A stretch of DNA of 64,000 nucleotides from Schmidtea nova (taxonomy: Eukaryota): the NCBI GenBank assembly GCA_044892505.1, contig CM097882.1, forward strand, positions 440,200,001 through 440,264,000, given 5' to 3'. How positions within the stretch are numbered: position 1 is the first letter of the stretch; every line of letters starts with the position of its first letter. The notes under the pieces were generated by a model. That model was not told the origin of the DNA and did no database searches. It saw only the letters and a list, made by a program, of their open reading frames with translations. Made by a program: the position numbers and the translations under genes. Positions 33,101 through 64,000 of this stretch are shown here, one piece after another.

Positions 33101-36100
33101 AATTATCTATGTCTCTATTCAAGCTGTGCTGTTTTTATGATTCTGGAAGAATAACTGGTATTGTTTTAGATTTCGGAGATTGTGTAACCCACAAAGACAT
33201 TTACCTTATGCTATTGGCAGAATTGATTTAGCATGAAAAGACTTAACTGATTATCTAATGAAAATTATGAGGAGAGGGGACAGTTTTACAACTACTACCG
33301 AGAGAGAAATTGTTAGAGATATTAAAGAAAAAAAATCATATATCGCTTTAGATTTCTAACTTGAAATGTAATCACCTGTCTTTACATCTTCTTTAGAAAA
33401 AAGGATGTCTACGATCAATCAAATGGGAATTACATAATTGATTAACATGTACTTTTTCTAATAAAATAATTGTTTAAAAAAGTTATTAAATAATAATTGA
33501 TTACTTTCCAGTACTGCTAATAATTACAAAGGAAAGGGTTTTGAGGATATCTATGTTTATAAATAAATAGTCACATAAAACAAACAAAACTGCACTATTC
33601 TTTCTTTTTTTATTTTAATAAAATGATATAAATGTAAGAATGCAAGCGACAAAAGGCTAAATAAAAATTTATCTCAGTTAAGTTTCGTTTCGGTTAGGCT
33701 TTCCTAATAATTAATGATAAGTAAATTAAAGCTATAAGCTACCCAAAACACAACTCAAAATCAACCTCAGATGTACGATAAAATTGCTAAATAGAAATTT
33801 GAAATTTATTTTATTTTTAAAATTAATTAAATTTAGGTAAAAGGCACAGAAGAAAACGGATTAAGCAGAGAAAGAAATCTGAAAAATCAAACAATGAATT
33901 TACCGGGAAAAAGAATATAATTACTACGGATCATATTGTTATCGATACAGATCAGTGCCAACAGATCGAATTGTCCACCAGCGATAGCAATAATCTGTCA
34001 TCGTCTTTTGAATACATTCAGGAGAACTTTTATCCGACTTTTTGTTTTGAATCTAATCCAGAAATATCTTTATCGAAAGATGAATGTAGCAACAATATCA
34101 GCAAAGATAGACCAAAGAAGTCAATCAAAACAAATTTCTCAAATTTTATCAGTGATGATTATGAAAAATTTAAAAAATCCGATCAATTGCTTACGAATTT
34201 CTCGGAAAATAAAGATAATTCACAGAGGCAAAAGCTTGACTCTGAGAATGTCAGTAAATCTCGTGAAAATAATACAAGTTTAATTAATTATTTATTAACA
34301 AAACAATTCACGGACAAATCTCCAATATCGAGGTTGGGTAAATTAATGAAACAGGTGAATAATGAAGTTCCGGAAGTAATTAAGAAAGAATCCTTTGTAA
34401 AATTAAATTCACTAATAAGTCATTCACGAGCTAATATTAATGAAGAGTTCGACATTTATTGCGAATCAGAAATATCAGATACATTCGACTCTCGAACTGA
34501 ATCTATGAATTCTCTGGAATTCGAAAGTGATTTTGACATGAGTGAACAGTTGAATCTTCATATAACAAATTACAGTCAACCAGAAAACCATGAATTCACA
34601 TTCACAATAGAGCACAGATATGATCCAATTAAAAGCGTGACAAAGAATCTGACAAAAAAATTAAAAAAATCGTCATTAGTCTTCAGTTATCTAACTAAAG
34701 ATTCCTGTGAAATCTTAAATGAAAACTACCAACTAGTTAAAAACTCTTTAAACAACATTTTACAACAGAAAGAGCAAATAAAAAATAAAACTGAATATAC
34801 AAAATTGTTTTTAGATCAAATAAAAAAAGACGGATACCGTGGGAATAGGGTGGAGAGCATATTCGACCTTGTGAACTCTGTCAATGAACAAAATGAAGAA
34901 GACACTGTTTATCAAATAATGGAATACTATAATGATACACCGAATGAAAGTGATGACGACGAAGATCCTTTAGAATATTCTGAGGAAACTAAATTATTAG
35001 TTTGTGGATCAGAAATTTCCAACGTAAAGCAAAAATTAAAAACAATTGAAAATGTTTCGAAAAAATTAAACGATGTTCTGCTTGAAAATACTGAAGATAA
35101 AAATGAAATTATTTTAGATCGGCCTTTAGTGAAAGAATTAGAAAATCTCATCAATATTTACGGAAAAGAAGTACAAGAGAATAATGCAGGATTTTTGCAA
35201 GAAGAAGAAACGAAAATTATTGATGAAGCTTATGAAATATTAAATCATGCAATGAAAAAAAAGAAACAAACAACAAATGATATTTTATTAAAATTATCCC
35301 AAGACGAAGCCAATAAATTGCTAGAGGCGCTGAAGATTTTAAAAATTAATACGGCAATTATAAAGCATATGAAAGAAAATGAAAATTTTGAAAGTTTTAA
35401 TTTAAAAAATGCGAAAGAAGTTAGAAACATTGTAAATCAAACCATTGAGATAAATTGTAATGAAAATCTCGTAAAGTCTCTAAAATCTATTGTCAGCAAA
35501 AGTATAGGTATTCACAAAAATAAAAGCACAATTTTTGAATTAATTGAAGTTATAGAAAAACTAGAAAATAAGGGAGAAAACAATAAAATAAAATGCAACG
35601 AAAAAGAAACCCAAATAATAAATGAGGTACTTGACACAATCGAAGAGGCAGATGAAACAAGAGTAGACTTTCAAATAGAAAATGAAATAGTTTTAGAAAT
35701 GACAGATAGCATCGATATTCAGCTGCAGGAAATAGAAGACACGATTGTGAACAATTCGGAGAATCAAAAAGAATTTGGAAAAAATAAAAATAAAAATGTA
35801 AAAATGCTAAACAATAAATTTGAGCAAAAATCCAATCAACAAAATAAAAAAAATAAAACAGAAAACATTAAACAAAATAAAGAAACATTATCAACAAAAG
35901 AAAACAAAATAATAGAACAAGAAATATATAAGGATGTTAAAAAAAACAAAATGAAAAAAGACAAAAATAAAAATGAATTATTTTTAAAAGTAGAAGAGAA
36001 AGAAAAAAAGAAAATCCCAATCGAAATAATTTTAAAAGAATTGGTGGAAACGTCAAAGAGCGATCAAATAAAATTGAAAGGCCAAGATTTATCAAAATTG

Positions 36101-39100
36101 TCAAAAGCTATTGATACAATTGAAAGTAGGATTAACGAAACTCCAGACGCTGAAAGATCCAAGGAGTGGAAAGCAAATAAATCTTTACTGGAATCTATTC
36201 TCCCTAAAGTACAAGAAGTCGTTGATTGCAAATCAAAAGAATTAGATCTGAACAAAGACGAAGCACAAAGACTAAGCAAATTGTGCAAAGATGTTGCAGA
36301 ATCCCATCTTCCAGATTCGACAGTAATTAGAAATGCAGACATAGTAGATGACATCGTTGATGAAGTAACTGAGGAACGTAAAGTTGGGCTTGAAAATGGA
36401 CAAAAGTTGTTATTTGATGCATTGGATAAGGGTGAGTTAGACAATCTCAAAGGCAAAGAACTAGTTGAAAGTTTAGAAATAATGAAAGCATTGATTCCGA
36501 AATCCAAAGCGGGAGAGAAAGAACGGAAATTTCTAGACGACGTAATAGACGATTTGAAAAAGTCTTTAAAAAGTGGATCAAAAGTGAAAATCGACAAGTC
36601 TGTTTGTGAACAATTAAAAGCTTTAGGTAAAAAGAGTGAAAAGAGATTAGTTAATTCCGATGAGGATAGCAACAAACTGCTCGAAGCAATTAGATGTTTA
36701 TTTGATGAGGAAGAAGGCGAAAAAGAAAAGTTACTGAACCGGAAAGATATTGACAATTTACTGTGTGGAATAAAAGTCGCAAAAGATGCATTGAAAAATG
36801 AAATAAGTGAAGCGAAACTGATAGAGTTAGAAGAGATATTATTGAAGGAAGTCTCTGATGGAAAAGATCTCATTAGACTAGAAGCGACAGTCAATGAACC
36901 TCTCATTGGTATTCTATGTGAAGCTGTCCAAATTCAATCGAGCATTCCGGATATTGCGGAACGTATAAGAAAATCTCGACAAGACGAAATTGAAAACAGT
37001 CGACGAACAATTGAAACAATCTTGAAAGAATTAGTGGAAACGTCAAAGAGCGATCAAATAAAATTGAAAGGCCAAGATTTATCAAAATTGTCAAAAGCTA
37101 TTGATACAATTGAAAGTAGGATTAACGAAACTCCAGACGCTGAAAGATCCAAGGAGTGGAAAGCAAATAAATCTTTACTGGAATCTATTCTCCCTAAAGT
37201 ACAAGAAGTCGTTGATTGCAAATCAAAAGAATTAGATCTGAACAAAGACGAAGCACAAAGACTAAGCAAATTGTGCAAAGATGTTGCAGAATCCCATCTT
37301 CCAGATTCGACAGTAATTAGAAATGCAGACATAGTAGATGACATCGTTGATGAAGTAACTGAGGAACGTAAAGTTGGGCTTGAAAATGGACAAAAGTTGT
37401 TATTTGATGCATTGGATAAGGGTGAGTTAGACAATCTCAAAGGCAAAGAACTAGTTGAAAGTTTAGAAATAATGAAAGCATTGATTCCGAAATCCAAAGC
37501 GGGAGAGAAAGAACGGAAATTTTTAGACGACGTAATAGACGATTTGAAAAAGTCTTTAAAAAGTGGATCAAAAGTGAAAATCGACAAGTCTGTTTGTGAA
37601 CAATTAAAAGCTTTAGGTAAAAAGAGTGAAAAGAGATTAGTTAATTCCGATGAGGATAGCAACAAACTGCTCGAAGCAATTAGATGTTTATTTGATGAGG
37701 AAGAAGGCGAAAAAGAAAAGTTACTGAACCGGAAAGATATTGACAATTTACTGTGTGGAATAAAAGTCGCAAAAGATGCATTGAAAAATGAAATAAGTGA
37801 AGCGAAACTGATAGAGTTAGAAGAGATATTATTGAAGGAAGTCTCTAATGGAAAAGATCTCATTAGACTAGAAGCGACAGTCAATGAACCTCTCATTGGT
37901 ATTCTATGTGAAGCTGTCCAAATTCAATCGAGCATTCCGGATATTGCGGAACGTATAAGAAAATCTCGACAAGACGAAATTGAAAACAGTCGACGAACAA
38001 TTGAAACAATCTTGAAAGAATTAGTGGAAACGTCAAAGAGCGATCAAATAAAATTGAAAGGCCAAGATTTATCAAAATTGTCAAAAGCTATTGATACAAT
38101 TGAAAGTAGGATTAACGAAACTCCAGACGCTGAAAGATCCAAGGAGTGGAAAGCAAATAAATCTTTACTGGAATCTATTCTCCCTAAAGTACAAGAAGTC
38201 GTTGATTGCAAATCAAAAGAATTAGATCTGAACAAAGACGAAGCACAAAGACTAAGCAAATTGTGCAAAGATGTTGCAGAATCCCATCTTCCAGATTCGA
38301 CAGTAATTAGAAATGCAGACATAGTAGATGACATCGTTGATGAAGTAACTGAGGAACGTAAAGTTGGGCTTGAAAATGGACAAAAGTTGTTATTTGATGC
38401 ATTGGATAAGGGTGAGTTAGACAATCTCAAAGGCAAAGAACTAGTTGAAAGTTTAGAAATAATGAAAGCATTGATTCCGAAATCCAAAGCGGGAGAGAAA
38501 GAACGGAAATTTCTAGACGACGTAATAGACGATTTGAAAAAGTCTTTAAAAAGTGGATCAAAAGTGAAAATCGACAAGTCTGTTTGTGAACAATTAAAAG
38601 CTTTAGGTAAAAAGAGTGAAAAGAGATTAGTTAATTCCGATGAGGATAGCAACAAACTGCTCGAAGCAATTAGATGTTTAATTGATGAGGAAGAAGGCGA
38701 AAAAGAAAAGTTACTGAACCGGAAAGATATTGACAATTTACTGTGTGGAATAAAAGTCGCAAAAGATGCATTGAAAAATGAAATAAGTGAAGCGAAACTG
38801 ATAGAGTTAGAAGAGATATTATTGAAGGAAGTCTCTAATGGAAAAGATCTCATTAGACTAGAAGCGACAGTCAATGAACCTCTCATTGGTATTCTATGTG
38901 AAGCTGTCCAAATTCAATCGAGCATTCCGGATATTGCGGAACGTATAAGAAAATCTCGACAAGACGAAATTGAAAACAGTCGACGAACAATTGAAACAAT
39001 CTTGAAAGAATTAGTGGAAACGTCAAAGAGCGATCAAATAAAATTGAAAGGCCAAGATTTATCAAAATTGTCAAAAGCTATTGATACAATTGAAAGTAGG

Positions 39101-42100
39101 ATTAACGAAACTCCAGACGCTGAAAGATCCAAGGAGTGGAAAGCAAATAAATCTTTACTGGAATCTATTCTCCCTAAAGTACAAGAAGTCGTTGATTGCA
39201 AATCAAAAGAATTAGATCTGAACAAAGACGAAGCACAAAGACTAAGCAAATTGTGCAAAGATGTTGCAGAATCCCATCTTCCAGATTCGACAGTAATTAG
39301 AAATGCAGACATAGTAGATGACATCGTTGATGAAGTAACTGAGGAACGTAAAGTTGGGCTTGAAAATGGACAAAAGTTGTTATTTGATGCATTGGATAAG
39401 GGTGAGTTAGACAATCTCAAAGGCAAAGAACTAGTTGAAAGTTTAGAAATAATGAAAGCATTGATTCCGAAATCCAAAGCGGGAGAGAAAGAACGGAAAT
39501 TTCTAGACGACGTAATAGACGATTTGAAAAAGTCTTTAAAAAGTGGATCAAAAGTGAAAATCGACAAGTCTGTTTGTGAACAATTAAAAGCTTTAGGTAA
39601 AAAGAGTGAAAAGAGATTAGTTAATTCCGATGAGGATAGCAACAAACTGCTCGAAGCAATTAGATGTTTAATTGATGAGGAAGAAGGCGAAAAAGAAAAG
39701 TTACTGAACCGGAAAGATATTGACAATTTACTGTGTGGAATAAAAGTCGCAAAAGATGCATTGAAAAATGAAATAAGTGAAGCGAAACTGATAGAGTTAG
39801 AAGAGATATTATTGAAGGAAGTCTCTAATGGAAAAGATCTCATTAGACTAGAAGCGACAGTCAATGAACCTCTCATTGGTATTCTATGTGAAGCTGTCCA
39901 AATTCAATCGAGCATTCCGGATATTGCGGAACGTATAAGAAAATCTCGACAAGACGAAATTGAAAACAGTCGACGACCAATTGAAACAATCTTGAAAGAA
40001 TTAGTGGAAACGTCAAAGAGCGATCAAATAAAATTGAAAGGCCAAGATTTATCAAAATTGTCAAAAGCTATTGATACAATTGAAAGTAGGATTAACGAAA
40101 CTCCAGACGCTGAAAGATCCAAGGAGTGGAAAGCAAATAAATCTTTACTGGAATCTATTCTCCCTAAAGTACAAGAAGTCGTTGATTGCAAATCAAAAGA
40201 ATTAGATCTGAACAAAGACGAAGCACAAAGACTAAGCAAATTGTGCAAAGATGTTGCAGAATCCCATCTTCCAGATTCGACAGTAATTAGAAATGCAGAC
40301 ATAGTAGATGACATCGTTGATGAAGTAACTGAGGAACGTAAAGTTGGGCTTGAAAATGGACAAAAGTTGTTATTTGATGCATTGGATAAGGGTGAGTTAG
40401 ACAATCTCAAAGGCAAAGAACTAGTTGAAAGTTTAGAAATAATGAAAGCATTGATTCCGAAATCCAAAGCGGGAGAGAAAGAACGGAAATTTCTAGACGA
40501 CGTAATAGACGATTTGAAAAAGTCTTTAAAAAGTGGATCAAAAGTGAAAATCGACAAGTCTGTTTGTGAACAATTAAAAGCTTTAGGTAAAAAGAGTGAA
40601 AAGAGATTAGTTAATTCCGATGAGGATAGCAACAAACTGCTCGAAGCAATTAGATGTTTATTTGATGAGGAAGAAGGCGAAAAAGAAAAGTTACTGAACC
40701 GGAAAGATATTGACAATTTACTGTGTGGAATAAAAGTCGCAAAAGATGCATTGAAAAATGAAATAAGTGAAGCGAAACTGATAGAGTTAGAAGAGATATT
40801 ATTGAAGGAAGTCTCTAATGGAAAAGATCTCTTTAGACTAGAAGCGACAGTCAATGAACCTCTCATTGGTATTCTATGTGAAGCTGTCCAAATTCAATCG
40901 AGCATTCCGGATATTGCGGAACGTATAAGAAAATCTCGACAAGACGAAATTGAAAACAGTCGACGAACAATTGAAACAATCTTGAAAGAATTAGTGGAAA
41001 CGTCAAAGAGCGATCAAATAAAATTGAAAGGCCAAGATTTATCAAAATTGTCAAAAGCTATTGATACAATTGAAAGTAGGATTAACGAAACTCCAGACGC
41101 TGAAAGATCCAAGGAGTGGAAAGCAAATAAATCTTTACTGGAATCTATTCTCCCTAAAGTACAAGAAGTCGTTGATTGCAAATCAAAAGAATTAGATCTG
41201 AACAAAGACGAAGCACAAAGACTAAGCAAATTGTGCAAAGATGTTGCAGAATCCCATCTTCCAGATTCGACAGTAATTAGAAATGCAGACATAGTAGATG
41301 ACATCGTTGATGAAGTAACTGAGGAACGTAAAGTTGGGCTTGAAAATGGACAAAAGTTGTTATTTGATGCATTGGATAAGGGTGAGTTAGACAATCTCAA
41401 AGGCAAAGAACTAGTTGAAAGTTTAGAAATAATGAAAGCATTGATTCCGAAATCCAAAGCGGGAGAGAAAGAACGGAAATTTCTAGACGACGTAATAGAC
41501 GATTTGAAAAAGTCTTTAAAAAGTGGATCAAAAGTGAAAATCGACAAGTCTGTTTGTGAACAATTAAAAGCTTTAGGTAAAAAGAGTGAAAAGAGATTAG
41601 TTAATTCCGATGAGGATAGCAACAAACTGCTCGAAGCAATTAGATGTTTATTTGATGAGGAAGAAGGCGAAAAAGAAAAGTTACTGAACCGGAAAGATAT
41701 TGACAATTTACTGTGTGGAATAAAAGTCGCAAAAGATGCATTGAAAAATGAAATAAGTGAAGCGAAACTGATAGAGTTAGAAAAGATATTATTGAAGGAA
41801 GTCTCTGATGGAAAAGATCTCATTAGACTAGAAGCGACAGTCAATGAACCTCTCATTGGTATTCTATGTGAAGCTGTCCAAATTCAATCGAGCATTCCGG
41901 ATATTGCGGAACGTATAAGAAAATCTCGACAAGACGAAATTGAAAACAGTCGACGACCAATTGAAACAATCTTGAAAGAATTAGTGGAAACGTCAAAGAG
42001 CGATCAAATAAAATTGAAAGGCCAAGATTTATCAAAATTGTCAAAAGCTATTGATACAATTGAAAGTAGGATTAACGAAACTCCAGACGCTGAAAGATCC

Positions 42101-45100
42101 AAGGAGTGGAAAGCAAATAAATCTTTACTGGAATCTATTCTCCCTAAAGTACAAGAAGTCGTTGATTGCAAATCAAAAGAATTAGATCTGAACAAAGACG
42201 AAGCACAAAGACTAAGCAAATTGTGCAAAGATGTTGCAGAATCCCATCTTCCAGATTCGACAGTAATTAGAAATGCAGACATAGTAGATGACATCGTTGA
42301 TGAAGTAACTGAGGAACGTAAAGTTGGGCTTGAAAATGGACAAAAGTTGTTATTTGATGCATTGGATAAGGGTGAGTTAGACAATCTCAAAGGCAAAGAA
42401 CTAGTTGAAAGTTTAGAAATAATGAAAGCATTGATTCCGAAATCCAAAGCGGGAGAGAAAGAACGGAAATTTCTAGACGACGTAATAGACGATTTAAAAA
42501 AGTCTTTAAAAAGTGGATCAAAAGTGAAAATCGACAAGTCTGTTTGTGAACAATTAAAAGCTTTAGGTAAAAAGAGTGAAAAGAGATTAGTTAATTCCGA
42601 TGAGGATAGCAACAAACTGCTCGAAGCAATTAGATGTTTATTTGATGAGGAAGAAGGCGAAAAAGAAAAGTTACTGAACCGGAAAGATATTGACAATTTA
42701 CTGTGTGGAATAAAAGTCGCAAAAGATGCATTGAAAAATGAAATAAGTGAAGCGAAACTGATAGAGTTAGAAGAGATATTATTGAAGGAAGTCTCTGATG
42801 GAAAAGATCTCATTAGACTAGAAGCGACAGTCAATGAACCTCTCATTGGTATTCTATGTGAAGCTGTCCAAATTCAATCGAGCATTCCGGATATTGCGGA
42901 ACGTATAAGAAAATCTCGACAAGACGAAATTGAAAACAGTCGACGACCAATTGAAACAATCTTGAAAGAATTAGTGGAAACGTCAAAGAGCGATCAAATA
43001 AAATTGAAAGGCCAAGATTTATCAAAATTGTCAAAAGCTATTGATACAATTGAAAGTAGGATTAACGAAACTCCAGACGCTGAAAGATCCAAGGAGTGGA
43101 AAGCAAATAAATCTTTACTGGAATCTATTCTCCCTAAAGTACAAGAAGTCGTTGATTGCAAATCAAAAGAATTAGATCTGAACAAAGACGAAGCACAAAG
43201 ACTAAGCAAATTGTGCAAAGATGTTGCAGAATCCCATCTTCCAGATTCGACAGTAATTAGAAATGCAGACATAGTAGATGACATCGTTGATGAAGTAACT
43301 GAGGAACGTAAAGTTGGGCTTGAAAATGGACAAAAGTTGTTATTTGATGCATTGGATAAGGGTGAGTTAGACAATCTCAAAGGCAAAGAACTAGTTGAAA
43401 GTTTAGAAATAATGAAAGCATTGATTCCGAAATCCAAAGCGGGAGAGAAAGAACGGAAATTTCTAGACGACGTAATAGACGATTTGAAAAAGTCTTTAAA
43501 AAGTGGATCAAAAGTGAAAATCGACAAGTCTGTTTGTGAACAATTAAAAGCTTTAGGTAAAAAGAGTGAAAAGAGATTAGTTAATTCCGATGAGGATAGC
43601 AACAAACTGCTCGAAGCAATTAGATGTTTATTTGATGAGGAAGAAGGCGAAAAAGAAAAGTTACTGAACCGGAAAGATATTGACAATTTACTGTGTGGAA
43701 TAAAAGTCGCAAAAGATGCATTGAAAAATGAAATAAGTGAAGCGAAACTGATAGAGTTAGAAGAGATATTATTGAAGGAAGTCTCTGATGGAAAAGATCT
43801 CATTAGACTAGAAGCGACAGTCAATGAACCTCTCATTGGTATTCTATGTGAAGCTGTCCAAATTCAATCGAGCATTCCGGATATTGCGGAACGTATAAGA
43901 AAATCTCGACAAGACGAAATTGAAAACAGTCGACGACCAATTGAAACAATCTTGAAAGAATTAGTGGAAACGTCAAAGAGCGATCAAATAAAATTGAAAG
44001 GCCAAGATTTATCAAAATTGTCAAAAGCTATTGATACAATTGAAAGTAGGATTAACGAAACTCCAGACGCTGAAAGATCCAAGGAGTGGAAAGCAAATAA
44101 ATCTTTACTGGAATCTATTCTCCCTAAAGTACAAGAAGTCGTTGATTGCAAATCAAAAGAATTAGATCTGAACAAAGACGAAGCACAAAGACTAAGCAAA
44201 TTGTGCAAAGATGTTGCAGAATCCCATCTTCCAGATTCGACAGTAATTAGAAATGCAGACATAGTAGATGACATCGTTGATGAAGTAACTGAGGAACGTA
44301 AAGTTGGGCTTGAAAATGGACAAAAGTTGTTATTTGATGCATTGGATAAGGGTGAGTTAGACAATCTCAAAGGCAAAGAACTAGTTGAAAGTTTAGAAAT
44401 AATGAAAGCATTGATTCCGAAATCCAAAGCGGGAGAGAAAGAACGGAAATTTCTAGACGACGTAATAGACGATTTGAAAAAGTCTTTAAAAAGTGGATCA
44501 AAAGTGAAAATCGACAAGTCTGTTTGTGAACAATTAAAAGCTTTAGGTAAAAAGAGTGAAAAGAGATTAGTTAATTCCGATGAGGATAGCAACAAACTGC
44601 TCGAAGCAATTAGATGTTTATTTGATGAGGAAGAAGGCGAAAAAGAAAAGTTACTGAACCGGAAAGATATTGACAATTTACTGTGTGGAATAAAAGTCGC
44701 AAAAGATGCATTGAAAAATGAAATAAGTGAAGCGAAACTGATAGAGTTAGAAGAGATATTATTGAAGGAAGTCTCTGATGGAAAAGATCTCATTAGACTA
44801 GAAGCGACAGTCAATGAACCTCTCATTGGTATTCTATGTGAAGCTGTCCAAATTCAATCGAGCATTCCGGATATTGCGGAACGTATAAGAAAATCTCGAC
44901 AAGACGAAATTGAAAACAGTCGACGACCAATTGAAACAATCTTGAAAGAATTAGTAGAAACGTCAAAGAGCGATCAAATAAAATTGAAAGGCCAAGATTT
45001 ATCAAAATTGTCAAAAGCTATTGATACAATTGAAAGTAGGATTAACGAAACTCCAGACGCTGAAAGATCCAAGGAGTGGAAAGCAAATAAATCTTTACTG

Positions 45101-54100: not shown

Positions 54101-57100
54101 TTGTGCAAAGATGTTGCAGAATCCCATCTTCCAGATTCGACAGTAATTAGAAATGCAGACATAGTAGATGACATCGTTGATGAAGTAACTGAGGAACGTA
54201 AAGTTGGGCTTGAAAATGGACAAAAGTTGTTATTTGATGCATTGGATAAGGGTGAGTTAGACAATCTCAAAGGCAAAGAACTAGTTGAAAGTTTAGAAAT
54301 AATGAAAGCATTGATTCCGAAATCCAAAGCGGGAGAGAAAGAACGGAAATTTCTAGACGACGTAATAGACGATTTGAAAAAGTCTTTAAAAAGTGGATCA
54401 AAAGTGAAAATCGACAAGTCTGTTTGTGAACAATTAAAAGCTTTAGGTAAAAAGAGTGAAAAGAGATTAGTTAATTCCGATGAGGATAGCAACAAACTGC
54501 TCGAAGCAATTAGATGTTTATTTGATGAGGAAGAAGGCGAAAAAGAAAAGTTACTGAACCGGAAAGATATTGACAATTTACTGTGTGGAATAAAAGTCGC
54601 AAAAGATGCATTGAAAAATGAAATAAGTGAAGCGAAACTGATAGAGTTAGAAGAGATATTATTGAAGGAAGTCTCTGATGGAAAAGATCTCATTAGACTA
54701 GAAGCGACAGTCAATGAACCTCTCATTGGTATTCTATGTGAAGCTGTCCAAATTCAATCGAGCATTCCGGATATTGCGGAACGTATAAGAAAATCTCGAC
54801 AAGACGAAATTGAAAACAGTCGACGACCAATTGAAACAATCTTGAAAGAATTAGTGGAAACGTCAAAGAGCGATCAAATAAAATTGAAAGGCCAAGATTT
54901 ATCAAAATTGTCAAAAGCTATTGATACAATTGAAAGTAGGATTAACGAAACTCCAGACGCTGAAAGATCCAAGGAGTGGAAAGCAAATAAATCTTTACTG
55001 GAATCTATTCTCCCTAAAGTACAAGAAGTCGTTGATTGCAAATCAAAAGAATTAGATCTGAACAAAGACGAAGCACAAAGACTAAGCAAATTGTGCAAAG
55101 ATGTTGCAGAATCCCATCTTCCAGATTCGACAGTAATTAGAAATGCAGACATAGTAGATGACATCGTTGATGAAGTAACTGAGGAACGTAAAGTTGGGCT
55201 TGAAAATGGACAAAAGTTGTTATTTGATGCATTGGATAAGGATGAGTTAGACAATCTCAAAGGCAAAGAACTAGTTGAAAGTTTAGAAATAATGAAAGCA
55301 TTGATTCCGAAATCCAAAGCGGGAGAGAAAGAACGGAAATTTCTAGACGACGTAATAGACGATTTGAAAAAGTCTTTAAAAAGTGGATCAAAAGTGAAAA
55401 TCGACAAGTCTGTTTGTGAACAATTAAAAGCTTTAGGTAAAAAGAGTGAAAAGAGATTAGTTAATTCCGATGAGGATAGCAACAAACTGCTCGAAGCAAT
55501 TAGATGTTTATTTGATGAGGAAGAAGGCGAAAAAGAAAAGTTACTGAACCGGAAAGATATTGACAATTTACTGTGTGGAATAAAAGTCGCAAAAGATGCA
55601 TTGAAAAATGAAATAAGTGAAGCGAAACTGATAGAGTTAGAAGAGATATTATTGAAGGAAGTCTCTGATGGAAAAGATCTCATTAGACTAGAAGCGACAG
55701 TCAATGAACCTCTCATTGGTATTCTATGTGAAGCTGTCCAAATTCAATCGAGCATTCCGGATATTGCGGAACGTATAAGAAAATCTCGACAAGACGAAAT
55801 TGAAAACAGTCGACGACCAATTGAAACAATCTTGAAAGAATTAGTGGAAACGTCAAAGAGCGATCAAATAAAATTGAAAGGCCAAGATTTATCAAAATTG
55901 TCAAAAGCTATTGATACAATTGAAAGTAGGATTAACGAAACTCCAGACGCTGAAAGATCCAAGGAGTGGAAAGCAAATAAATCTTTACTGGAATCTATTC
56001 TCCCTAAAGTACAAGAAGTCGTTGATTGCAAATCAAAAGAATTAGATCTGAACAAAGACGAAGCACAAAGACTAAGCAAATTGTGCAAAGATGTTGCAGA
56101 ATCCCATCTTCCAGATTCGACAGTAATTAGAAATGCAGACATAGTAGATGACATCGTTGATGAAGTAACTGAGGAACGTAAAGTTGGGCTTGAAAATGGA
56201 CAAAAGTTGTTATTTGATGCATTGGATAAGGATGAGTTAGACAATCTCAAAGGCAAAGAACTAGTTGAAAGTTTAGAAATAATGAAAGCATTGATTCCGA
56301 AATCCAAAGCGGGAGAGAAAGAACGGAAATTTCTAGACGACGTAATAGACGATTTGAAAAAGTCTTTAAAAAGTGGATCAAAAGTGAAAATCGACAAGTC
56401 TGTTTGTGAACAATTAAAAGCTTTAGGTAAAAAGAGTGAAAAGAGATTAGTTAATTCCGATGAGGATAGCAACAAACTGCTCGAAGCAATTAGATGTTTA
56501 TTTGATGAGGAAGAAGGCGAAAAAGAAAAGTTACTGAACCGGAAAGATATTGACAATTTACTGTGTGGAATAAAAGTCGCAAAAGATGCATTGAAAAATG
56601 AAATAAGTGAAGCGAAACTGATAGAGTTAGAAGAGATATTATTGAAGGAAGTCTCTGATGGAAAAGATCTCATTAGACTAGAAGCGACAGTCAATGAACC
56701 TCTCATTGGTATTCTATGTGAAGCTGTCCAAATTCAATCGAGCATTCCGGATATTGCGGAACGTATAAGAAAATCTCGACAAGACGAAATTGAAAACAGT
56801 CGACGACCAATTGAAACAATCTTGAAAGAATTAGTGGAAACGTCAAAGAGCGATCAAATAAAATTGAAAGGCCAAGATTTATCAAAATTGTCAAAAGCTA
56901 TTGATACAATTGAAAGTAGGATTAACGAAACTCCAGACGCTGAAAGATCCAAGGAGTGGAAAGCAAATAAATCTTTACTGGAATCTATTCTCCCTAAAGT
57001 ACAAGAAGTCGTTGATTGCAAATCAAAAGAATTAGATCTGAACAAAGACGAAGCACAAAGACTAAGCAAATTGTGCAAAGATGTTGCAGAATCCCATCTT

Positions 57101-60100
57101 CCAGATTCGACAGTAATTAGAAATGCAGACATAGTAGATGACATCGTTGATGAAGTAACTGAGGAACGTAAAGTTGGGCTTGAAAATGGACAAAAGTTGT
57201 TATTTGATGCATTGGATAAGGATGAGTTAGACAATCTCAAAGGCAAAGAACTAGTTGAAAGTTTAGAAATAATGAAAGCATTGATTCCGAAATCCAAAGC
57301 GGGAGAGAAAGAACGGAAATTTCTAGACGACGTAATAGACGATTTGAAAAAGTCTTTAAAAAGTGGATCAAAAGTGAAAATCGACAAGTCTGTTTGTGAA
57401 CAATTAAAAGCTTTAGGTAAAAAGAGTGAAAAGAGATTAGTTAATTCCGATGAGGATAGCAACAAACTGCTCGAAGCAATTAGATGTTTATTTGATGAGG
57501 AAGAAGACGAAAAAGAAAAGTTACTGAACCGGAAAGATATTGACAATTTACTGTGTGGAATAAAAGTCGCAAAAGATGCATTGAAAAATGAAATAAGTGA
57601 AGCGAAACTGATAGAGTTAGAAGAGATATTATTGAAGGAAGTCTCTGATGGAAAAGATCTCATTAGACTAGAAGCGACAGTCAATGAACCTCTCATTGGT
57701 ATTCTATGTGAAGCTGTCCAAATTCAATCGAGCATTCCGGATATTGCGGAACGTATAAGAAAATCTCGACAAGACGAAATTGAAAACAGTCGACGACCAA
57801 TTGAAACAATCTTGAAAGAATTAGTGGAAACGTCAAAGAGCGATCAAATAAAATTGAAAGGCCAAGATTTATCAAAATTGTCAAAAGCTATTGATACAAT
57901 TGAAAGTAGGATTAACGAAACTCCAGACGCTGAAAGATCCAAGGAGTGGAAAGCAAATAAATCTTTACTGGAATCTATTCTCCCTAAAGTACAAGAAGTC
58001 GTTGATTGCAAATCAAAAGAATTAGATCTGAACAAAGACGAAGCACAAAGACTAAGCAAATTGTGCAAAGATGTTGCAGAATCCCATCTTCCAGATTCGA
58101 CAGTAATTAGAAATGCAGACATAGTAGATGACATCGTTGATGAAGTAACTGAGGAACGTAAAGTTGGGCTTGAAAATGGACAAAAGTTGTTATTTGATGC
58201 ATTGGATAAGGGTGAGTTAGACAATCTCAAAGGCAAAGAACTAGTTGAAAGTTTAGAAATAATGAAAGCATTGATTCCGAAATCCAAAGCGGGAGAGAAA
58301 GAACGGAAATTTCTAGACGACGTAATAGACGATTTGAAAAAGTCTTTAAAAAGTGGATCAAAAGTGAAAATCGACAAGTCTGTTTGTGAACAATTAAAAG
58401 CTTTAGGTAAAAAGAGTGAAAAGAGATTAGTTAATTCCGATGAGGATAGCAACAAACTGCTCGAAGCAATTAGATGTTTATTTGATGAGGAAGAAGGCGA
58501 AAAAGAAAAGTTACTGAACCGGAAAGATATTGACAATTTACTGTGTGGAATAAAAGTCGCAAAAGATGCATTGAAAAATGAAATAAGTGAAGCGAAACTG
58601 ATAGAGTTAGAAGAGATATTATTGAAGGAAGTCTCTGATGGAAAAGATCTCATTAGACTAGAAGCGACAGTCAATGAACCTCTCATTGGTATTCTATGTG
58701 AAGCTGTCCAAATTCAATCGAGCATTCCGGATATTGCGGAACGTATAAGAAAATCTCGACAAGACGAAATTGAAAACAGTCGACGACCAATTGAAACAAT
58801 CTTGAAAGAATTAGTGGAAACGTCAAAGAGCGATCAAATAAAATTGAAAGGCCAAGATTTATCAAAATTGTCAAAAGCTATTGATACAATTGAAAGTAGG
58901 ATTAATGAAACTCCAGACGCTGAAAGATCCAAGGAGTGGAAAGCAAATAAATCTTTACTGGAATCTATTCTCCCTAAAGTACAAGAAGTCGTTGATTGCA
59001 AATCAAAAGAATTAGATCTGAACAAAGACGAAGCACAAAGACTAAGCAAATTGTGCAAAGATGTTGCAGAATCCCATCTTCCAGATTCGACAGTAATTAG
59101 AAATGCAGACATAGTAGATGACATCGTTGATGAAGTAACTGAGGAACGTAAAGTTGGGCTTGAAAATGGACAAAAGTTGTTATTTGATGCATTGGATAAG
59201 GGTGAGTTAGACAATCTCAAAGGCAAAGAACTAGTTGAAAGTTTAGAAATAATGAAAGCATTGATTCCGAAATCCAAAGCGGGAGAGAAAGAACGGAAAT
59301 TTCTAGACGACGTAATAGACGATTTGAAAAAGTCTTTAAAAAGTGGATCAAAAGTGAAAATCGACAAGTCTGTTTGTGAACAATTAAAAGCTTTAGGTAA
59401 AAAGAGTGAAAAGAGATTAGTTAATTCCGATGAGGATAGCAACAAACTGCTCGAAGCAATTAGATGTTTATTTGATGAGGAAGAAGGCGAAAAAGAAAAG
59501 TTACTGAACCGGAAAGATATTGACAATTTACTGTGTGGAATAAAAGTCGCAAAAGATGCATTGAAAAATGAAATAAGTGAAGCGAAACTGATAGAGTTAG
59601 AAGAGATATTATTGAAGGAAGTCTCTGATGGAAAAGATCTCATTAGACTAGAAGCGACAGTCAATGAACCTCTCATTGGTATTCTATGTGAAGCTGTCCA
59701 AATTCAATCGAGCATTCCGGATATTGCGGAACGTATAAGAAAATCTCGACAAGACGAAATTGAAAACAGTCGACGACCAATTGAAACAATCTTGAAAGAA
59801 TTAGTGGAAACGTCAAAGAGCGATCAAATAAAATTGAAAGGCCAAGATTTATCAAAATTGTCAAAAGCTATTGATACAATTGAAAGTAGGATTAACGAAA
59901 CTCCAGACGCTGAAAGATCCAAGGAGTGGAAAGCAAATAAATCTTTACTGGAATCTATTCTCCCTAAAGTACAAGAAGTCGTTGATTGCAAATCAAAAGA
60001 ATTAGATCTGAACAAAGACGAAGCACAAAGACTAAGCAAATTGTGCAAAGATGTTGCAGAATCCCATCTTCCAGATTCGACAGTAATTAGAAATGCAGAC

Positions 60101-63100
60101 ATAGTAGATGACATCGTTGATGAAGTAACTGAGGAACGTAAAGTTGGGCTTGAAAATGGACAAAAGTTGTTATTTGATGCATTGGATAAGGGTGAGTTAG
60201 ACAATCTCAAAGGCAAAGAACTAGTTGAAAGTTTAGAAATAATGAAAGCATTGATTCCGAAATCCAAAGCGGGAGAGAAAGAACGGAAATTTCTAGACGA
60301 CGTAATAGACGATTTGAAAAAGTCTTTAAAAAGTGGATCAAAAGTGAAAATCGACAAGTCTGTTTGTGAACAATTAAAAGCTTTAGGTAAAAAGAGTGAA
60401 AAGAGATTAGTTAATTCCGATGAGGATAGCAACAAACTGCTCGAAGCAATTAGATGTTTATTTGATGAGGAAGAAGGCGAAAAAGAAAAGTTACTGAACC
60501 GGAAAGATATTGACAATTTACTGTGTGGAATAAAAGTCGCAAAAGATGCATTGAAAAATGAAATAAGTGAAGCGAAACTGATAGAGTTAGAAGAGATATT
60601 ATTGAAGGAAGTCTCTGATGGAAAAGATCTCATTAGACTAGAAGCGACAGTCAATGAACCTCTCATTGGTATTCTATGTGAAGCTGTCCAAATTCAATCG
60701 AGCATTCCGGATATTGCGGAACGTATAAGAAAATCTCGACAAGACGAAATTGAAAACAGTCGACGACCAATTGAAACAATCTTGAAAGAATTAGTGGAAA
60801 CGTCAAAGAGCGATCAAATAAAATTGAAAGGCCAAGATTTATCAAAATTGTCAAAAGCTATTGATACAATTGAAAGTAGGATTAACGAAACTCCAGACGC
60901 TGAAAGATCCAAGGAGTGGAAAGCAAATAAATCTTTACTGGAATCTATTCTCCCTAAAGTACAAGAAGTCGTTGATTGCAAATCAAAAGAATTAGATCTG
61001 AACAAAGACGAAGCACAAAGACTAAGCAAATTGTGCAAAGATGTTGCAGAATCCCATCTTCCAGATTCGACAGTAATTAGAAATGCAGACATAGTAGATG
61101 ACATCGTTGATGAAGTAACTGAGGAACGTAAAGTTGGGCTTGAAAATGGACAAAAGTTGTTATTTGATGCATTGGATAAGGGTGAGTTAGACAATCTCAA
61201 AGGCAAAGAACTAGTTGAAAGTTTAGAAATAATGAAAGCATTGATTCCGAAATCCAAAGCGGGAGAGAAAGAACGGAAATTTCTAGACGACGTAATAGAC
61301 GATTTGAAAAAGTCTTTAAAAAGTGGATCAAAAGTGAAAATCGACAAGTCTGTTTGTGAACAATTAAAAGCTTTAGGTAAAAAGAGTGAAAAGAGATTAG
61401 TTAATTCCGATGAGGATAGCAACAAACTGCTCGAAGCAATTAGATGTTTATTTGATGAGGAAGAAGGCGAAAAAGAAAAGTTACTGAACCGGAAAGATAT
61501 TGACAATTTACTGTGTGGAATAAAAGTCGCAAAAGATGCATTGAAAAATGAAATAAGTGAAGCGAAACTGATAGAGTTAGAAGAGATATTATTGAAGGAA
61601 GTCTCTGATGGAAAAGATCTCATTAGACTAGAAGCGACAGTCAATGAACCTCTCATTGGTATTCTATGTGAAGCTGTCCAAATTCAATCGAGCATTCCGG
61701 ATATTGCGGAACGTATAAGAAAATCTCGACAAGACGAAATTGAAAACAGTCGACGACCAATTGAAACAATCTTGAAAGAATTAGTGGAAACGTCAAAGAG
61801 CGATCAAATAAAATTGAAAGGCCAAGATTTATCAAAATTGTCAAAAGCTATTGATACAATTGAAAGTAGGATTAACGAAACTCCAGACGCTGAAAGATCC
61901 AAGGAGTGGAAAGCAAATAAATCTTTACTGGAATCTATTCTCCCTAAAGTACAAGAAGTCGTTGATTGCAAATCAAAAGAATTAGATCTGAACAAAGACG
62001 AAGCACAAAGACTAAGCAAATTGTGCAAAGATGTTGCAGAATCCCATCTTCCAGATTCGACAGTAATTAGAAATGCAGACATAGTAGATGACATCGTTGA
62101 TGAAGTAACTGAGGAACGTAAAGTTGGGCTTGAAAATGGACAAAAGTTGTTATTTGATGCATTGGATAAGGATGAGTTAGACAATCTCAAAGGCAAAGAA
62201 CTAGTTGAAAGTTTAGAAATAATGAAAGCATTGATTCCGAAATCCAAAGCGGGAGAGAAAGAACGGAAATTTCTAGACGACGTAATAGACGATTTGAAAA
62301 AGTCTTTAAAAAGTGGATCAAAAGTGAAAATCGACAAGTCTGTTTGTGAACAATTAAAAGCTTTAGGTAAAAAGAGTGAAAAGAGATTAGTTAATTCCGA
62401 TGAGGATAGCAACAAACTGCTCGAAGCAATTAGATGTTTATTTGATGAGGAAGAAGGCGAAAAAGAAAAGTTACTGAACCGGAAAGATATTGACAATTTA
62501 CTGTGTGGAATAAAAGTCGCAAAAGATGCATTGAAAAATGAAATAAGTGAAGCGAAACTGATAGAGTTAGAAGAGATATTATTGAAGGAAGTCTCTGATG
62601 GAAAAGATCTCATTAGACTAGAAGCGACAGTCAATGAACCTCTCATTGGTATTCTATGTGAAGCTGTCCAAATTCAATCGAGCATTCCGGATATTGCGGA
62701 ACGTATAAGAAAATCTCGACAAGACGAAATTGAAAACAGTCGACGACCAATTGAAACAATCTTGAAAGAATTAGTGGAAACGTCAAAGAAGGATCAAATA
62801 AAATTGAAAGGCCAAGATTTATCAAAATTGTCAAAAGCTATTGATACAATTGAAAGTAGGATTAACGAAACTCCAGACGCTGAAAGATCCAAGGAGTGGA
62901 AAGCAAATAAATCTTTACTGGAATCTATTCTCCCTAAAGTACAAGAAGTCGTTGATTGCAAATCAAAAGAATTAGATCTGAACAAAGACGAAGCACAAAG
63001 ACTAAGCAAATTGTGCAAAGATGTTGCAGAATCCCATCTTCCAGATTCGACAGTAATTAGAAATGCAGACATAGTAGATGACATCGTTGATGAAGTAACT

Positions 63101-64000
63101 GAGGAACGTAAAGTTGGGCTTGAAAATGGACAAAAGTTGTTATTTGATGCATTGGATAAGGGTGAGTTAGACAATCTCAAAGGCAAAGAACTAGTTGAAA
63201 GTTTAGAAATAATGAAAGCATTGATTCCGAAATCCAAAGCGGGAGAGAAAGAACGGAAATTTCTAGACGACGTAATAGACGATTTGAAAAAGTCTTTAAA
63301 AAGTGGATCAAAAGTGAAAATCGACAAGTCTGTTTGTGAACAATTAAAAGCTTTAGGTAAAAAGAGTGAAAAGAGATTAGTTAATTCCGATGAGGATAGC
63401 AACAAACTGCTCGAAGCAATTAGATGTTTATTTGATGAGGAAGAAGGCGAAAAAGAAAAGTTACTGAACCGGAAAGATATTGACAATTTACTGTGTGGAA
63501 TAAAAGTCGCAAAAGATGCATTGAAAAATGAAATAAGTGAAGCGAAACTGATAGAGTTAGAAGAGATATTATTGAAGGAAGTCTCTGATGGAAAAGATCT
63601 CATTAGACTAGAAGCGACAGTCAATGAACCTCTCATTGGTATTCTATGTGAAGCTGTCCAAATTCAATCGAGCATTCCGGATATTGCGGAACGTATAAGA
63701 AAATCTCGACAAGACGAAATTGAAAACAGTCGACGACCAATTGAAACAATCTTGAAAGAATTAGTGGAAACGTCAAAGAGCGATCAAATAAAATTGAAAG
63801 GCCAAGATTTATCAAAATTGTCAAAAGCTATTGATACAATTGAAAGTAGGATTAATGAAACTCCAGACGCTGAAAGATCCAAGGAGTGGAAAGCAAATAA
63901 ATCTTTACTGGAATCTATTCTCCCTAAAGTACAAGAAGTCGTTGATTGCAAATCAAAAGAATTAGATCTGAACAAAGACGAAGCACAAAGACTAAGCAAA
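1482..64000 (+). CDS. Multi-exon gene model: kinesin-3 (STARD9/KIF16-like) motor joined to a giant tandem-repeat tail; 5' and 3' ends lie outside the window
   Basis: 15 exons with GT-AG boundaries read by eye: 1482-1554, 1599-1666, 4039-4145, 4192-4305, 7242-7339, 7387-7458, 7504-7539, 7601-7672, 10668-10692, 10734-10762, 19553-19593, 19644-20184, 20223-20300, 25686-25768, 33837->64000. Reading phase is consistent at 13 of 14 junctions. The exception is 10762/19553, across an 8.8-kb intron containing N gaps. Confidence 0.65.
2472..2501. repeat. (TA)n microsatellite
   Basis: Perfect TA dinucleotide run. Confidence 0.95.
3291..3775. repeat. Chain of alternating inverted repeats (palindromes), bounded and interrupted by N gaps
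   Basis: Arm 3291-3354 is nearly the reverse complement of 3364-3427 (9-nt spacer). A second palindrome is centred at 3719-3721. Segments 3428-3467 and 3623-3662 are reverse complements flanking the gap 3468-3620. Confidence 0.9.
3321..3362 (-). ncRNA. Candidate type I hammerhead ribozyme (U3:A8 variant, Penelope-type)
   Basis: Minus strand reads aauacacac UUGAUAA a GGC ugu GCC GAAA UAUU / guguuauu. This gives a core with compensatory U3-A8, a 3-bp stem II, palindromic AUAU stem III, and stem I of 4 bp + 1-nt bulge + 4 bp. Predicted cut between 3329 and 3328. Folded by eye only. Confidence 0.55.
4039..4305 (+). CDS. Kinesin motor exons (4039-4145, 4192-4305)
   Basis: Translation [36 protein letters not shown] / [38 protein letters not shown]. 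[13 protein letters not shown] is typical of kinesin-3. The 46-nt intron is 4146-4191, and the phase joins exon 1599-1666. Confidence 0.95.
5879..5956 (-). pseudogene. Histone H2B-derived fragment
   Basis: [26 protein letters not shown] aligns to canonical H2B [26 protein letters not shown] at 18 of 26 positions. Flanking codons do not resemble H2B. Confidence 0.75.
7242..7672 (+). CDS. Kinesin motor end, neck and first coiled coil (exons 7242-7339, 7387-7458, 7504-7539, 7601-7672)
   Basis: Translation [33 protein letters not shown] / [24 protein letters not shown] / [12 protein letters not shown] / [24 protein letters not shown]. ETxxTLRFA and [20 protein letters not shown] motifs are kinesin-3 hallmarks. 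Introns are 47, 45 and 61 nt. Confidence 0.92.
9882..10055. mobile_element. hAT (Charlie/Buster-like) MITE, 174 bp
   Basis: TIRs cagcggttctcaaa and tttcagaaccgctg (13/14 match). No intact 8-bp TSD is seen. Confidence 0.7.
10668..10762 (+). CDS. Two putative micro-exons (10668-10692, 25 nt; 10734-10762, 29 nt)
   Basis: GC-richer islands in AT-rich DNA with ag/gt boundaries and a 41-nt intron. Together they give 18 in-frame codons [18 protein letters not shown], and phase 0 matches the preceding exon. Confidence 0.6.
11599..11819. mobile_element. piggyBac-type MITE, 221 bp
   Basis: Perfect 15-bp TIRs CCACTTCATGCTTGG / CCAAGCATGAAGTGG. TTAA lies at 11595-11598 and GTAA (one mismatch) at 11820-11823. 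Confidence 0.8.
14982..15631. mobile_element. Non-autonomous hAT element (650 bp) with perfect 8-bp TSD
   Basis: TIRs CAGGGCCGGCT on both ends, with TSD tgtatgca at 14974-14981 and 15632-15639. It retains a hAT C-terminal remnant [13 protein letters not shown] just after 15311. Confidence 0.92.
15066..15303. mobile_element. hAT (Buster/Charlie-like) MITE, 238 bp, nested in the previous element
   Basis: TIRs caggggtcggtaac / gttgccgacccctg, with perfect TSD atgtaaat at 15058-15065 and 15304-15311. Confidence 0.93.
19553..20300 (+). CDS. Ser-rich linker exons of the kinesin gene (19553-19593, 19644-20184, 20223-20300)
   Basis: The three exons are separated by 50-nt and 38-nt GT-AG introns and are mutually in phase. 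The middle exon contains the track ORF 19805-20188 (…[45 protein letters not shown]…). Confidence 0.7.
20648..21425. mobile_element. hAT-type MITE with internal insertion and (TA)n
   Basis: Ends cagggtttcccaa and ttagggaacccctg are inverted. Flanks gtaaaaag / ttataaag match at 6/8, consistent with a decayed TSD. A caggcccg...gggcccgggcc end of another element starts at 20751. Confidence 0.6.
21050..21110. repeat. (TA)n microsatellite
   Basis: Perfect TA run of about 60 bp. Confidence 0.95.
22540..23350 (-). mobile_element. Degenerate hAT transposase fragments (internally deleted)
   Basis: Minus-strand pieces [35 protein letters not shown] (hAT CxxH motif) and [22 protein letters not shown]. 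Stops and frameshifts are present. Confidence 0.8.
24022..24630. repeat. Modular minisatellite built on ttggagggatctgtattctttcaaagatttt
   Basis: About a dozen core copies with two recurring linkers: aattagaatattaa (giving a 45-bp unit) and cttttcgtaagcttgataatatttgttgcagata. Confidence 0.9.
25686..25768 (+). CDS. Isolated 83-nt exon of the kinesin gene
   Basis: acag/…/gtaata boundaries; translation [29 protein letters not shown]. It starts in phase 2 (matching 20300) and ends in phase 1 (matching 33837). Confidence 0.7.
27135..30574 (-). mobile_element. Near-intact autonomous-type hAT DNA transposon (3,440 bp)
   Basis: TIRs CAGGGCCGGCCCTAG and CAGGCCCGGCCTTAG (13/15). Perfect 8-bp TSD cctggata at 27127-27134 and 30575-30582. 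Encodes a transposase on the minus strand. Confidence 0.95.
27458..29991 (-). pseudogene. hAT transposase (TTF-type Zn finger, ZMYM1-like DUF4371 core, hAT dimerisation domain) with two lesions
   Basis: Track ORFs 29707-29991, 27778-29694 and 27458-27790. Motifs: [71 protein letters not shown]. One in-frame TAA at 29707-29709 and one frameshift near 27810. Confidence 0.92.
30976..31025 (-). ncRNA. Candidate type I hammerhead ribozyme 3' of a Penelope-like element
   Basis: Minus strand reads auuagaga UUGACGA g GAUUAU uuu AUAAUC GAAA AUUU / ucuc acu uaau. This gives a U3:G8 core, 6-bp stem II, palindromic AAUU stem III, and stem I of 4 bp + 3-nt bulge + 4 bp. Predicted cut between 30987 and 30986. 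Confidence 0.55.
31458..32025 (-). mobile_element. Penelope-like retroelement 3' fragment (GIY-YIG endonuclease), degenerate
   Basis: [20 protein letters not shown]…TCKMENC…[34 protein letters not shown]…SSVYRHL, then in another frame [31 protein letters not shown]. This is the Penelope GIY-YIG layout, with the YIG glycine mutated to E and a frameshift. Confidence 0.85.
32026..32330 (-). mobile_element. Internally deleted mariner fragment
   Basis: Minus-strand [10 protein letters not shown] (N-terminal region) joined to [21 protein letters not shown]…[13 protein letters not shown]. Confidence 0.8.
32985..33402 (+). pseudogene. act: Actin pseudogene fragment (central part), no introns seen
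   Basis: Pieces EEH…[65 protein letters not shown]…[17 protein letters not shown]…YIALDF*LEM…SSLEK match conserved actin. Multiple stops and frameshifts. Confidence 0.92.
33837..64000 (+). CDS. Giant coding exon, open for at least 10,054 codons (frame +2), running off the window
   Basis: Acceptor atttag at 33831-33836. Codons start at 33839 ([13 protein letters not shown]…). Frame read without a stop through 726 unique codons into the repeats. K/E/D/L/I-rich codon usage; no indel in any repeat copy. Confidence 0.9.
36017..64000 (+). repeat. Coding tandem array: 28 full + 0.27 copies of a 990-bp (330-aa) unit, >99% identical
   Basis: Unit starts at 36017 + 990n (checked at 37007 and 63737). 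Unit protein [55 protein letters not shown]…[21 protein letters not shown]. The exact 990-bp periodicity is also visible in the ORF track. Confidence 0.98.

Follow-up and report, generated by a model that had tools for sequence, protein, structure and literature searches.

A probable giant coding exon built from near-identical 330-codon repeats in the planarian Schmidtea nova

We analysed a 64,000-nt stretch of the Schmidtea nova genome (assembly GCA_044892505.1, contig CM097882.1, positions 440,200,001 to 440,264,000 of the forward strand), referred to below as the window; positions on the contig are prefixed with C1. On its plus strand, one open frame begins about halfway along the window, runs off its end and is 23,639 codons (70.9 kb) long in total, comprising 726 unique codons, 69.2 tandem units of 990 bp and a short diverged tail. 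This frame is probably a genuine protein-coding exon of a multi-exon plus-strand gene, in which a segment of about 330 codons has been amplified or homogenised in frame to 69 copies. The unit is found at this single locus, its composition is of the coding type, and no domain database recognises it.

A first inspection of the window had reported an uninterrupted frame of at least 10,054 codons. We find frame +2 to be free of stops between positions 33827 and 64000, which corresponds to 10,058 codons, or to 10,054 if counted from position 33839. The 726 unique codons (33839-36016) and the in-frame 990-bp period starting at 36017 are reproduced, as are the tandem 330-residue copies, of which 28 full units and 264 nt of a further one lie within the window, and the unit composition of six Cys, one Trp and no Tyr. 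The longest open stretch in any other frame of the window has 642 codons. Following frame +2 downstream, as had been proposed as a check, was carried out with 240 kb of sequence of the same contig and places the first in-frame stop, a TGA, at window-equivalent position 104744 (numbering continued beyond the window end); the frame is thus open to C1:440304743 and closed by the TGA at C1:440304744. An independent protein search of the genome returned the same length (open_frame_aa 23639). The earlier observation is therefore confirmed, and the frame is much longer than first stated. As also noted before, the list of open reading frames (ORFs) for the window contains only antisense shadows, i.e. 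one minus-strand ORF of 280 residues per unit, and it lacks the giant frame because the lister omits ORFs that run off the window end.

Chance is excluded as the source of the open frame. Given the local base composition, the unique part would have stayed free of stops by chance with a probability of 5e-31 and a single unit with one of 4e-13, and the longest open stretch in 2,000 shuffles was 135 codons. Because the units are about 99.9% identical, the independent open-frame evidence amounts to about 1,056 distinct codons and not to 23,639. For the same reason the absence of indels and nonsense changes throughout the array, claimed in the original prediction and borne out here, carries a smaller evidential weight. 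The repeat period of 990 equals 3 x 330 and is divisible by three.

Coding character was assessed with a codon model trained on an independent intronless HSP70 ORF located about 39 kb downstream. With this model the sense frame reaches +0.38 bits per codon in the unit and +0.09 in the unique part; scores of the remaining five frames lie between -0.34 and -0.93. The sense frame alone is positive also in both flanking candidate exons, and in candidate exon b (Table 1) it is the best of the six frames. The GC content by codon position (0.50/0.28/0.28) resembles that of HSP70 (0.50/0.32/0.33), and synonymous codon choice correlates with that of HSP70 with r = 0.84-0.86. Neither an AT-rich GT..AG segment within the unit nor anything else hinting at hidden introns in the array was found. 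Coding-type statistics are thus present on the plus strand and in frame +2 only, in line with the coding claim made at the outset. Non-coding satellite DNA is ruled out, as one frame is open through the unit as well as through 726 unique codons and is the only frame to score positive. Taken together, these sequence properties indicate that the stretch is very probably real protein-coding sequence.

The array in the assembly consists of 69 full units and one partial 70th. All 70 protein matches of the unit in the genome fall in this one array and none lies elsewhere, which rules out a transposable element or dispersed repeat; the unique 726-codon part matches only itself and has no paralogue. 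Each unit deviates from the consensus by 0-5 nt, and the 69 units contain 24 distinct variants distributed over 18 distinct unit sequences, with 36 units identical to the consensus. Ten of the 24 variants are synonymous and 14 non-synonymous, compared with 21% synonymous changes expected at random, none creates a stop (5.9% expected), and indels are absent. This synonymous excess is suggestive but not conclusive.

The most diverged copies are units 1-6 and the last units, with a less diverged core. The 70th unit is identical to the others over about 190 nt and then fades (30, 28, 20, 17 and 10 matches per 30 nt), and the tail that follows is diverged but still unit-like. Divergence at the edges relative to the core, together with the fading last unit, is the pattern of a naturally homogenised array. 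Variants shared between units form irregular local clusters, such as G139D in units 13-27 and E324K in units 45-68, and these clusters fit unequal crossing-over, not a looped assembly path. The longest marker-free stretch of the array measures about 8 kb. The S. nova assembly schNov1 combines HiFi reads, obtained from DNA sheared to 14-22 kb and assembled by canu, with Hi-C data (PMC11410931). As the HiFi reads are longer than the marker gaps of about 8 kb, they could in principle resolve the array. The available part of the supplementary tables of PMC11410931 holds no entry for the locus. Four sequencing runs contain 75-98% of sampled words although their 298-528 million letters fall far short of the 1.25-Gb genome. 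This hints at an enriched library, for instance of cDNA, but 75% would equally fit all words except those of the repeat unit, and we draw no conclusion from it.

No known domain had been recognised in the repeat, and Pfam, the PDB, the ESM atlas and Foldseek give the same picture. Pfam yields nothing credible for the unit, for two units, for the unique part or for the flanking exons; a PDB sequence search and the ESM atlas return no match for the unit or the unique part; and Foldseek searches with models of the unit and of its residues 141-265 find only generic helical bundles with E > 0.4. When the unique part and one unit were searched together by phmmer against 1.84 billion representative proteins, one match was returned, here called P0001, with an E-value of 8.2e-5. 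The alignment covers unit residues 141-265 over 125 residues without gaps (32% identity, 57% positives). P0001 is a 524-residue ORF on a 2,071-bp JGI metagenome contig, and its ends, which flank the unit-like stretch, resemble a retroelement protease and integrase. Many S. nova elements share about 50% identity with the integrase part, and three such retroelements contain no unit-like part. The S. nova element at C1:324739052-324740590 (minus strand) shows the same spacing of both P0001 ends, with 33% identity over P0001 residues 2-176 and 48% over residues 423-514. A metagenome scan with the unit/P0001 alignment and a word-indexed search with a candidate 3' exon gave no match. To judge from these similarities, either a fragment of a homologous gene may have been picked up by a retroelement in another animal, or a retroelement accessory domain may have given rise to the unit. 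The P0001 match hints that the unit may share ancestry with such a retroelement-borne accessory domain.

The unit is dominated by Lys (46), Leu (44), Glu (43) and Asp (31), with a calculated mass of 37.2 kDa, an isoelectric point (pI) of 5.0 and a net charge of -13. Ser (27), Thr (7) and Pro (7) together account for 41 of the 330 residues (12%), and each unit contains two N-x-S/T sequons, an even number of Cys (six) and an Arg-Arg pair at its end. AlphaFold, run on the single sequence, predicts an all-helical unit with about 15 helices of 7-35 residues at a predicted local distance difference test (pLDDT) score of 49. When residues 141-265 are modelled together with P0001 the score is 62, with three helices at 70-88. 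The hydrophobicity power spectrum shows no periodicity of 3.5 or 3.6 residues and lies below shuffled sequences at all periods from 2 to 8. Each unit has 7 Pro and 12 Gly residues, and Gly or Pro break helices every 15-35 residues. A coiled-coil rod or single alpha-helix polymer is at odds with a spectrum below that of shuffles, with the short helices and with the Gly/Pro breaks. Where the first inspection had proposed a rod- or spring-like helical polymer, these features favour short helical bundles in a chain over one long rod. By eye, an internal motif of the form helix-turn-'phi-x-L-x3-[DE]-phi-x2-L' seems to recur about every 55 residues. As an internal module it was rejected, given that circular self-comparison, BLASTP self-hits and Smith-Waterman alignment (best z 4.5, one segment) were no better than shuffles. 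A hidden Markov model of the module compared with the region preceding the array likewise performed no better than shuffled controls, and we do not rely on the motif.

Among known systems, the ANC-1 protein of C. elegans contains six repeats, each 903 residues long and nearly identical in nucleotide sequence and predicted to be highly helical (PMC8139857). These repeats have no recognisable Pfam or spectrin repeat and are needed to provide a long spacer in the cytoplasm (PMC8139857). The S. nova array likewise consists of near-identical, predicted helical, orphan units of hundreds of residues in one frame. It differs from ANC-1 in having 69 x 330 instead of 6 x 903 residues, so that its repeat region is about four times as long, and its units have no sequence similarity to ANC-1. 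By analogy, the repeat region of ANC-1, a giant KASH protein and Nesprin-1/2 orthologue, appears to be the closest functional counterpart, but the S. nova protein would not be a member of that family.

Other large repetitive proteins fit less well. The adhesive proteins Mlig-ap1 and Mlig-ap2 of the flatworm Macrostomum lignano are reportedly very large and repetitive. Glue proteins of this type are secreted, with Lys-rich or known extracellular domains as their building blocks, whereas the S. nova unit is acidic and has no Pfam domain and no glycosylated linker; it is not counted among them. In profilaggrin, units of about 324 residues are encoded in one exon. Mucin variable number tandem repeat (VNTR) exons are described as one very large exon of tandem coding repeats with variable copy number (PMC13345508). 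The S. nova array shares with both the arrangement of tandem coding repeats in one very large exon. In contrast to these proteins, its unit is neither Pro/Thr/Ser-rich nor His-rich, and the terminal Arg-Arg is the only hint of a protease-sensitive linker. With 41 of 330 residues being Ser, Thr or Pro, and Lys, Leu, Glu and Asp dominant, the unit does not belong to the mucin VNTR type.

The sequence suggests the following origin. An older coding exon would have contained a helical segment of about 330 codons. Unequal crossing-over or gene conversion would then have multiplied this segment in frame, or would keep homogenising it continually. This would have led to the 69 near-identical tandem copies in the assembly and to an exon of about 23,600 codons. 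The product might form an acidic chain of small helical bundles that serves as an intracellular scaffold or spacer, with its length set by the copy number, similar to ANC-1.

Since the open frame runs for about 175 codons before its first in-frame Met, an upstream exon must carry the start codon. Upstream, candidate exon b is a stop-free stretch of 181 codons, and joining candidate exons a and b by script leaves the frame open (with DSLNES following the junction). The flanking candidate exons have canonical splice sites and compatible phase. For the giant exon itself the original prediction had placed the splice acceptor at 33836/33837. The AG at 33835-33836 is indeed present, but its phase does not match the nearest upstream candidate exon. 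The donor of exon b at 20184 leaves two bases of a codon (phase 2), so that an acceptor AG at 33842-43 or 33848-49 is favoured over the one at 33835-36, which would need another, phase-1 upstream exon. Candidates for the real acceptor are 33836/37, 33843/44 and 33849/50. On the 3' side, a coding-like stretch of 207 codons at window-equivalent 104938-105558 follows the donor-like site at 104690, and a possible further one lies at 108437-108583. In searches with single exons, exon b has no Pfam match and the candidate 3' exons have no Pfam or database match.

One rival explanation accepts the gene and the unit and ascribes the copy number to the assembly, canu having over-expanded or mis-tiled a shorter or different array. 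The near-identity of the units, with the consensus present in 36 of 69 copies, and the length of the array, which at 68 kb exceeds any HiFi read, speak for it. However, the marker variants are irregular and their gaps of at most 8 kb are shorter than the reads, the periodic block pattern of a looped path is missing, the divergence from edge to core looks natural, and HiFi accuracy resolved nested tandem repeats of more than 1 Mb (PMC11410931). We consider such an artefact unlikely. Equally unlikely in our view is a very recent neutral or harmful in-frame expansion in a (decaying) gene, in which case the array would be open by descent from one unit and no 2.7-MDa protein would exist. A divergence of about 0.1% leaves little time for stops and indels to arise, only 1.4 stops would be expected among 24 variants, and a period divisible by three has a 1-in-3 prior. 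Yet open, coding-like frames are found independently of the array in the 726 unique codons and in the flanking exons, the diverged 3' partial copy and P0001 suggest that the unit and its repetition predate the last homogenisation, and the share of synonymous variants is twice the random expectation.

The product could also be a secreted or granule-stored structural protein (of mucus, rhabdites or the cocoon) or a polyprotein that is cut at Arg-Arg into 37-kDa proteins, for which profilaggrin and the nematode polyprotein allergens are precedents. The even Cys number, the Arg-Arg end and the two sequons in each unit would be in keeping with this, but the unit is acidic, not Lys-rich as in flatworm glue-type genes, its Ser, Thr and Pro content is too low to be mucin-like, and Pro follows the Arg-Arg pair with no R-x-K/R-R furin motif, so that we give this reading little credence. 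Finally, the presence of one ATG-to-stop ORF of 280 residues per unit might point to a tandem array of genes on the minus strand. Against this, the antisense product is a low-complexity string rich in Ser, Phe and Leu, all antisense codon scores are negative (-0.34 to -0.93), the sense frame continues without a stop over the unit borders and through the unique 726 codons, and shadows of this kind are a typical antisense by-product of purine-rich sense strands. We regard minus-strand genes as barely conceivable and read these ORFs as shadows of the purine-rich sense strand.

Several points weigh against a giant coding exon of the kind we propose. Transcription and translation of the exon in one piece are inferred from its sequence. 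None of the listed sequencing runs is recorded as RNA, and the function is suggested by analogy only. The figure of 69 copies is a count from the assembly. With copies of so young an age, selection acting on the array can barely be tested, and the synonymous excess is based on 24 sites, with four of the synonymous ones at the 5' edge of the array. Both structure predictions have low confidence scores (pLDDT 49 and 62), and the protein language-model 'recognition' score falls within the range of shuffled sequences. No homologue of the unique parts was found by phmmer, by the protein search of the genome or by the word-indexed search. With respect to the comparison with ANC-1, no CH domain lies within 18 Mb of the locus at 440.2 Mb (PF00307 has 92 matches in the genome, none of them at C1:421.9-460.1 Mb). 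The KASH domain (PF10541) is unmatched across the genome, but also in control genomes, so that the power of this search is undemonstrated. Neither a spectrin match (PF00435) nor any other sensible Pfam match was obtained at E <= 1.

It is possible, though we hold this tentatively, that the gene is transcribed and translated just as assembled, with a single coding exon of about 70.8 kb and about 23,600 codons specifying an orphan helical domain in a protein of 2.66 MDa. Exon and polypeptide would then rank with the largest that have been proposed in animals, and be built from a domain that no database recognises. Giant tandem-repeat protein genes are already known, and what is unusual here is the scale together with the orphan domain. 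If expressed, the gene would provide a planarian system for studying the encoding and transcription of megadalton proteins and the maintenance of their reading frame, as well as concerted evolution inside a coding exon. It would also allow tests of the idea, put forward for ANC-1, that a mechanical or spacing function is adjusted through the number of repeats. For annotation, repeat maskers and ORF callers that drop frames at window edges would both hide such a gene.

Table 1. Positions of the open frame, its repeat units and candidate neighbouring exons (window numbering unless prefixed C1).
Feature	Position	Strand	Description
Candidate upstream exon a	19553..19593	+	41 nt; AG acceptor, GTATAT donor; putative, from sequence reading and splice-phase check
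Candidate intron between exons a and b		+	50 nt, 86% AT; from sequence reading
Candidate upstream exon b	19644..20184	+	about 180 codons, Ser/Thr/Asn-rich; donor AG/GTAAAC, phase 2
Unique 5' part of giant exon	33837..36016	+	726 codons from 33839; basic opening stretch
Tandem array within the window (28 full units, then 264 nt of the 29th)	36017..64000	+	990 bp = 330 codons each
Array beyond window	to about C1:440304520	+	69.2 units in total
Reference unit, equal to array consensus	42947..43936	+	37.2 kDa, pI 5.0, net charge -13, 6 Cys, Arg-Arg end
Antisense 280-residue ORF, example of one per unit	42994..43836	-	shadow of purine-rich sense frame
Possible 3' donor	C1:440304690 (window-equivalent 104690)	+	donor-like site

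The neighbourhood of the gene contains a number of further elements. Candidate exon b and the giant exon are separated by a gap of 13.6 kb, in which an ORF of a hAT-type transposase lies at 27781-29706 on the minus strand, with an open frame of 642 residues. It matches Pfam DUF4371 at 1e-14 and, weakly, a zinc finger, and further pieces of it extend to 29997 and 27461. Also within this gap, a short-period tandem repeat at 23898-24700 has open frames on both strands and abuts a masked run of N at 23659-23792. A fragment of a pogo/Tigger-type DDE_1 transposase is located at 259-555 on the plus strand (5e-14). Downstream of the array, the intronless HSP70-family ORF of 639 codons spans C1:440343385-440345301 on the plus strand and matches Pfam HSP70 at 3.5e-82 over its first 205 residues; it opens inside the domain and may be truncated or a retrocopy. 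Very long microsatellites of the (AAT)n type, which read as poly-Asn in one frame, occur several times per 100 kb downstream, at window-equivalent 126.1-127.1 kb, 159.2-159.5 kb, 219.9 kb and 287-289 kb. A retroelement with long open frames and protease- and reverse-transcriptase-like text lies at window-equivalent 180.9-184.9 kb on the plus strand. Within the array, 28 identical ATG-initiated antisense ORFs of 280 residues are listed between 36064 and 63636 on the minus strand, and an ORF-based annotator would call them genes.

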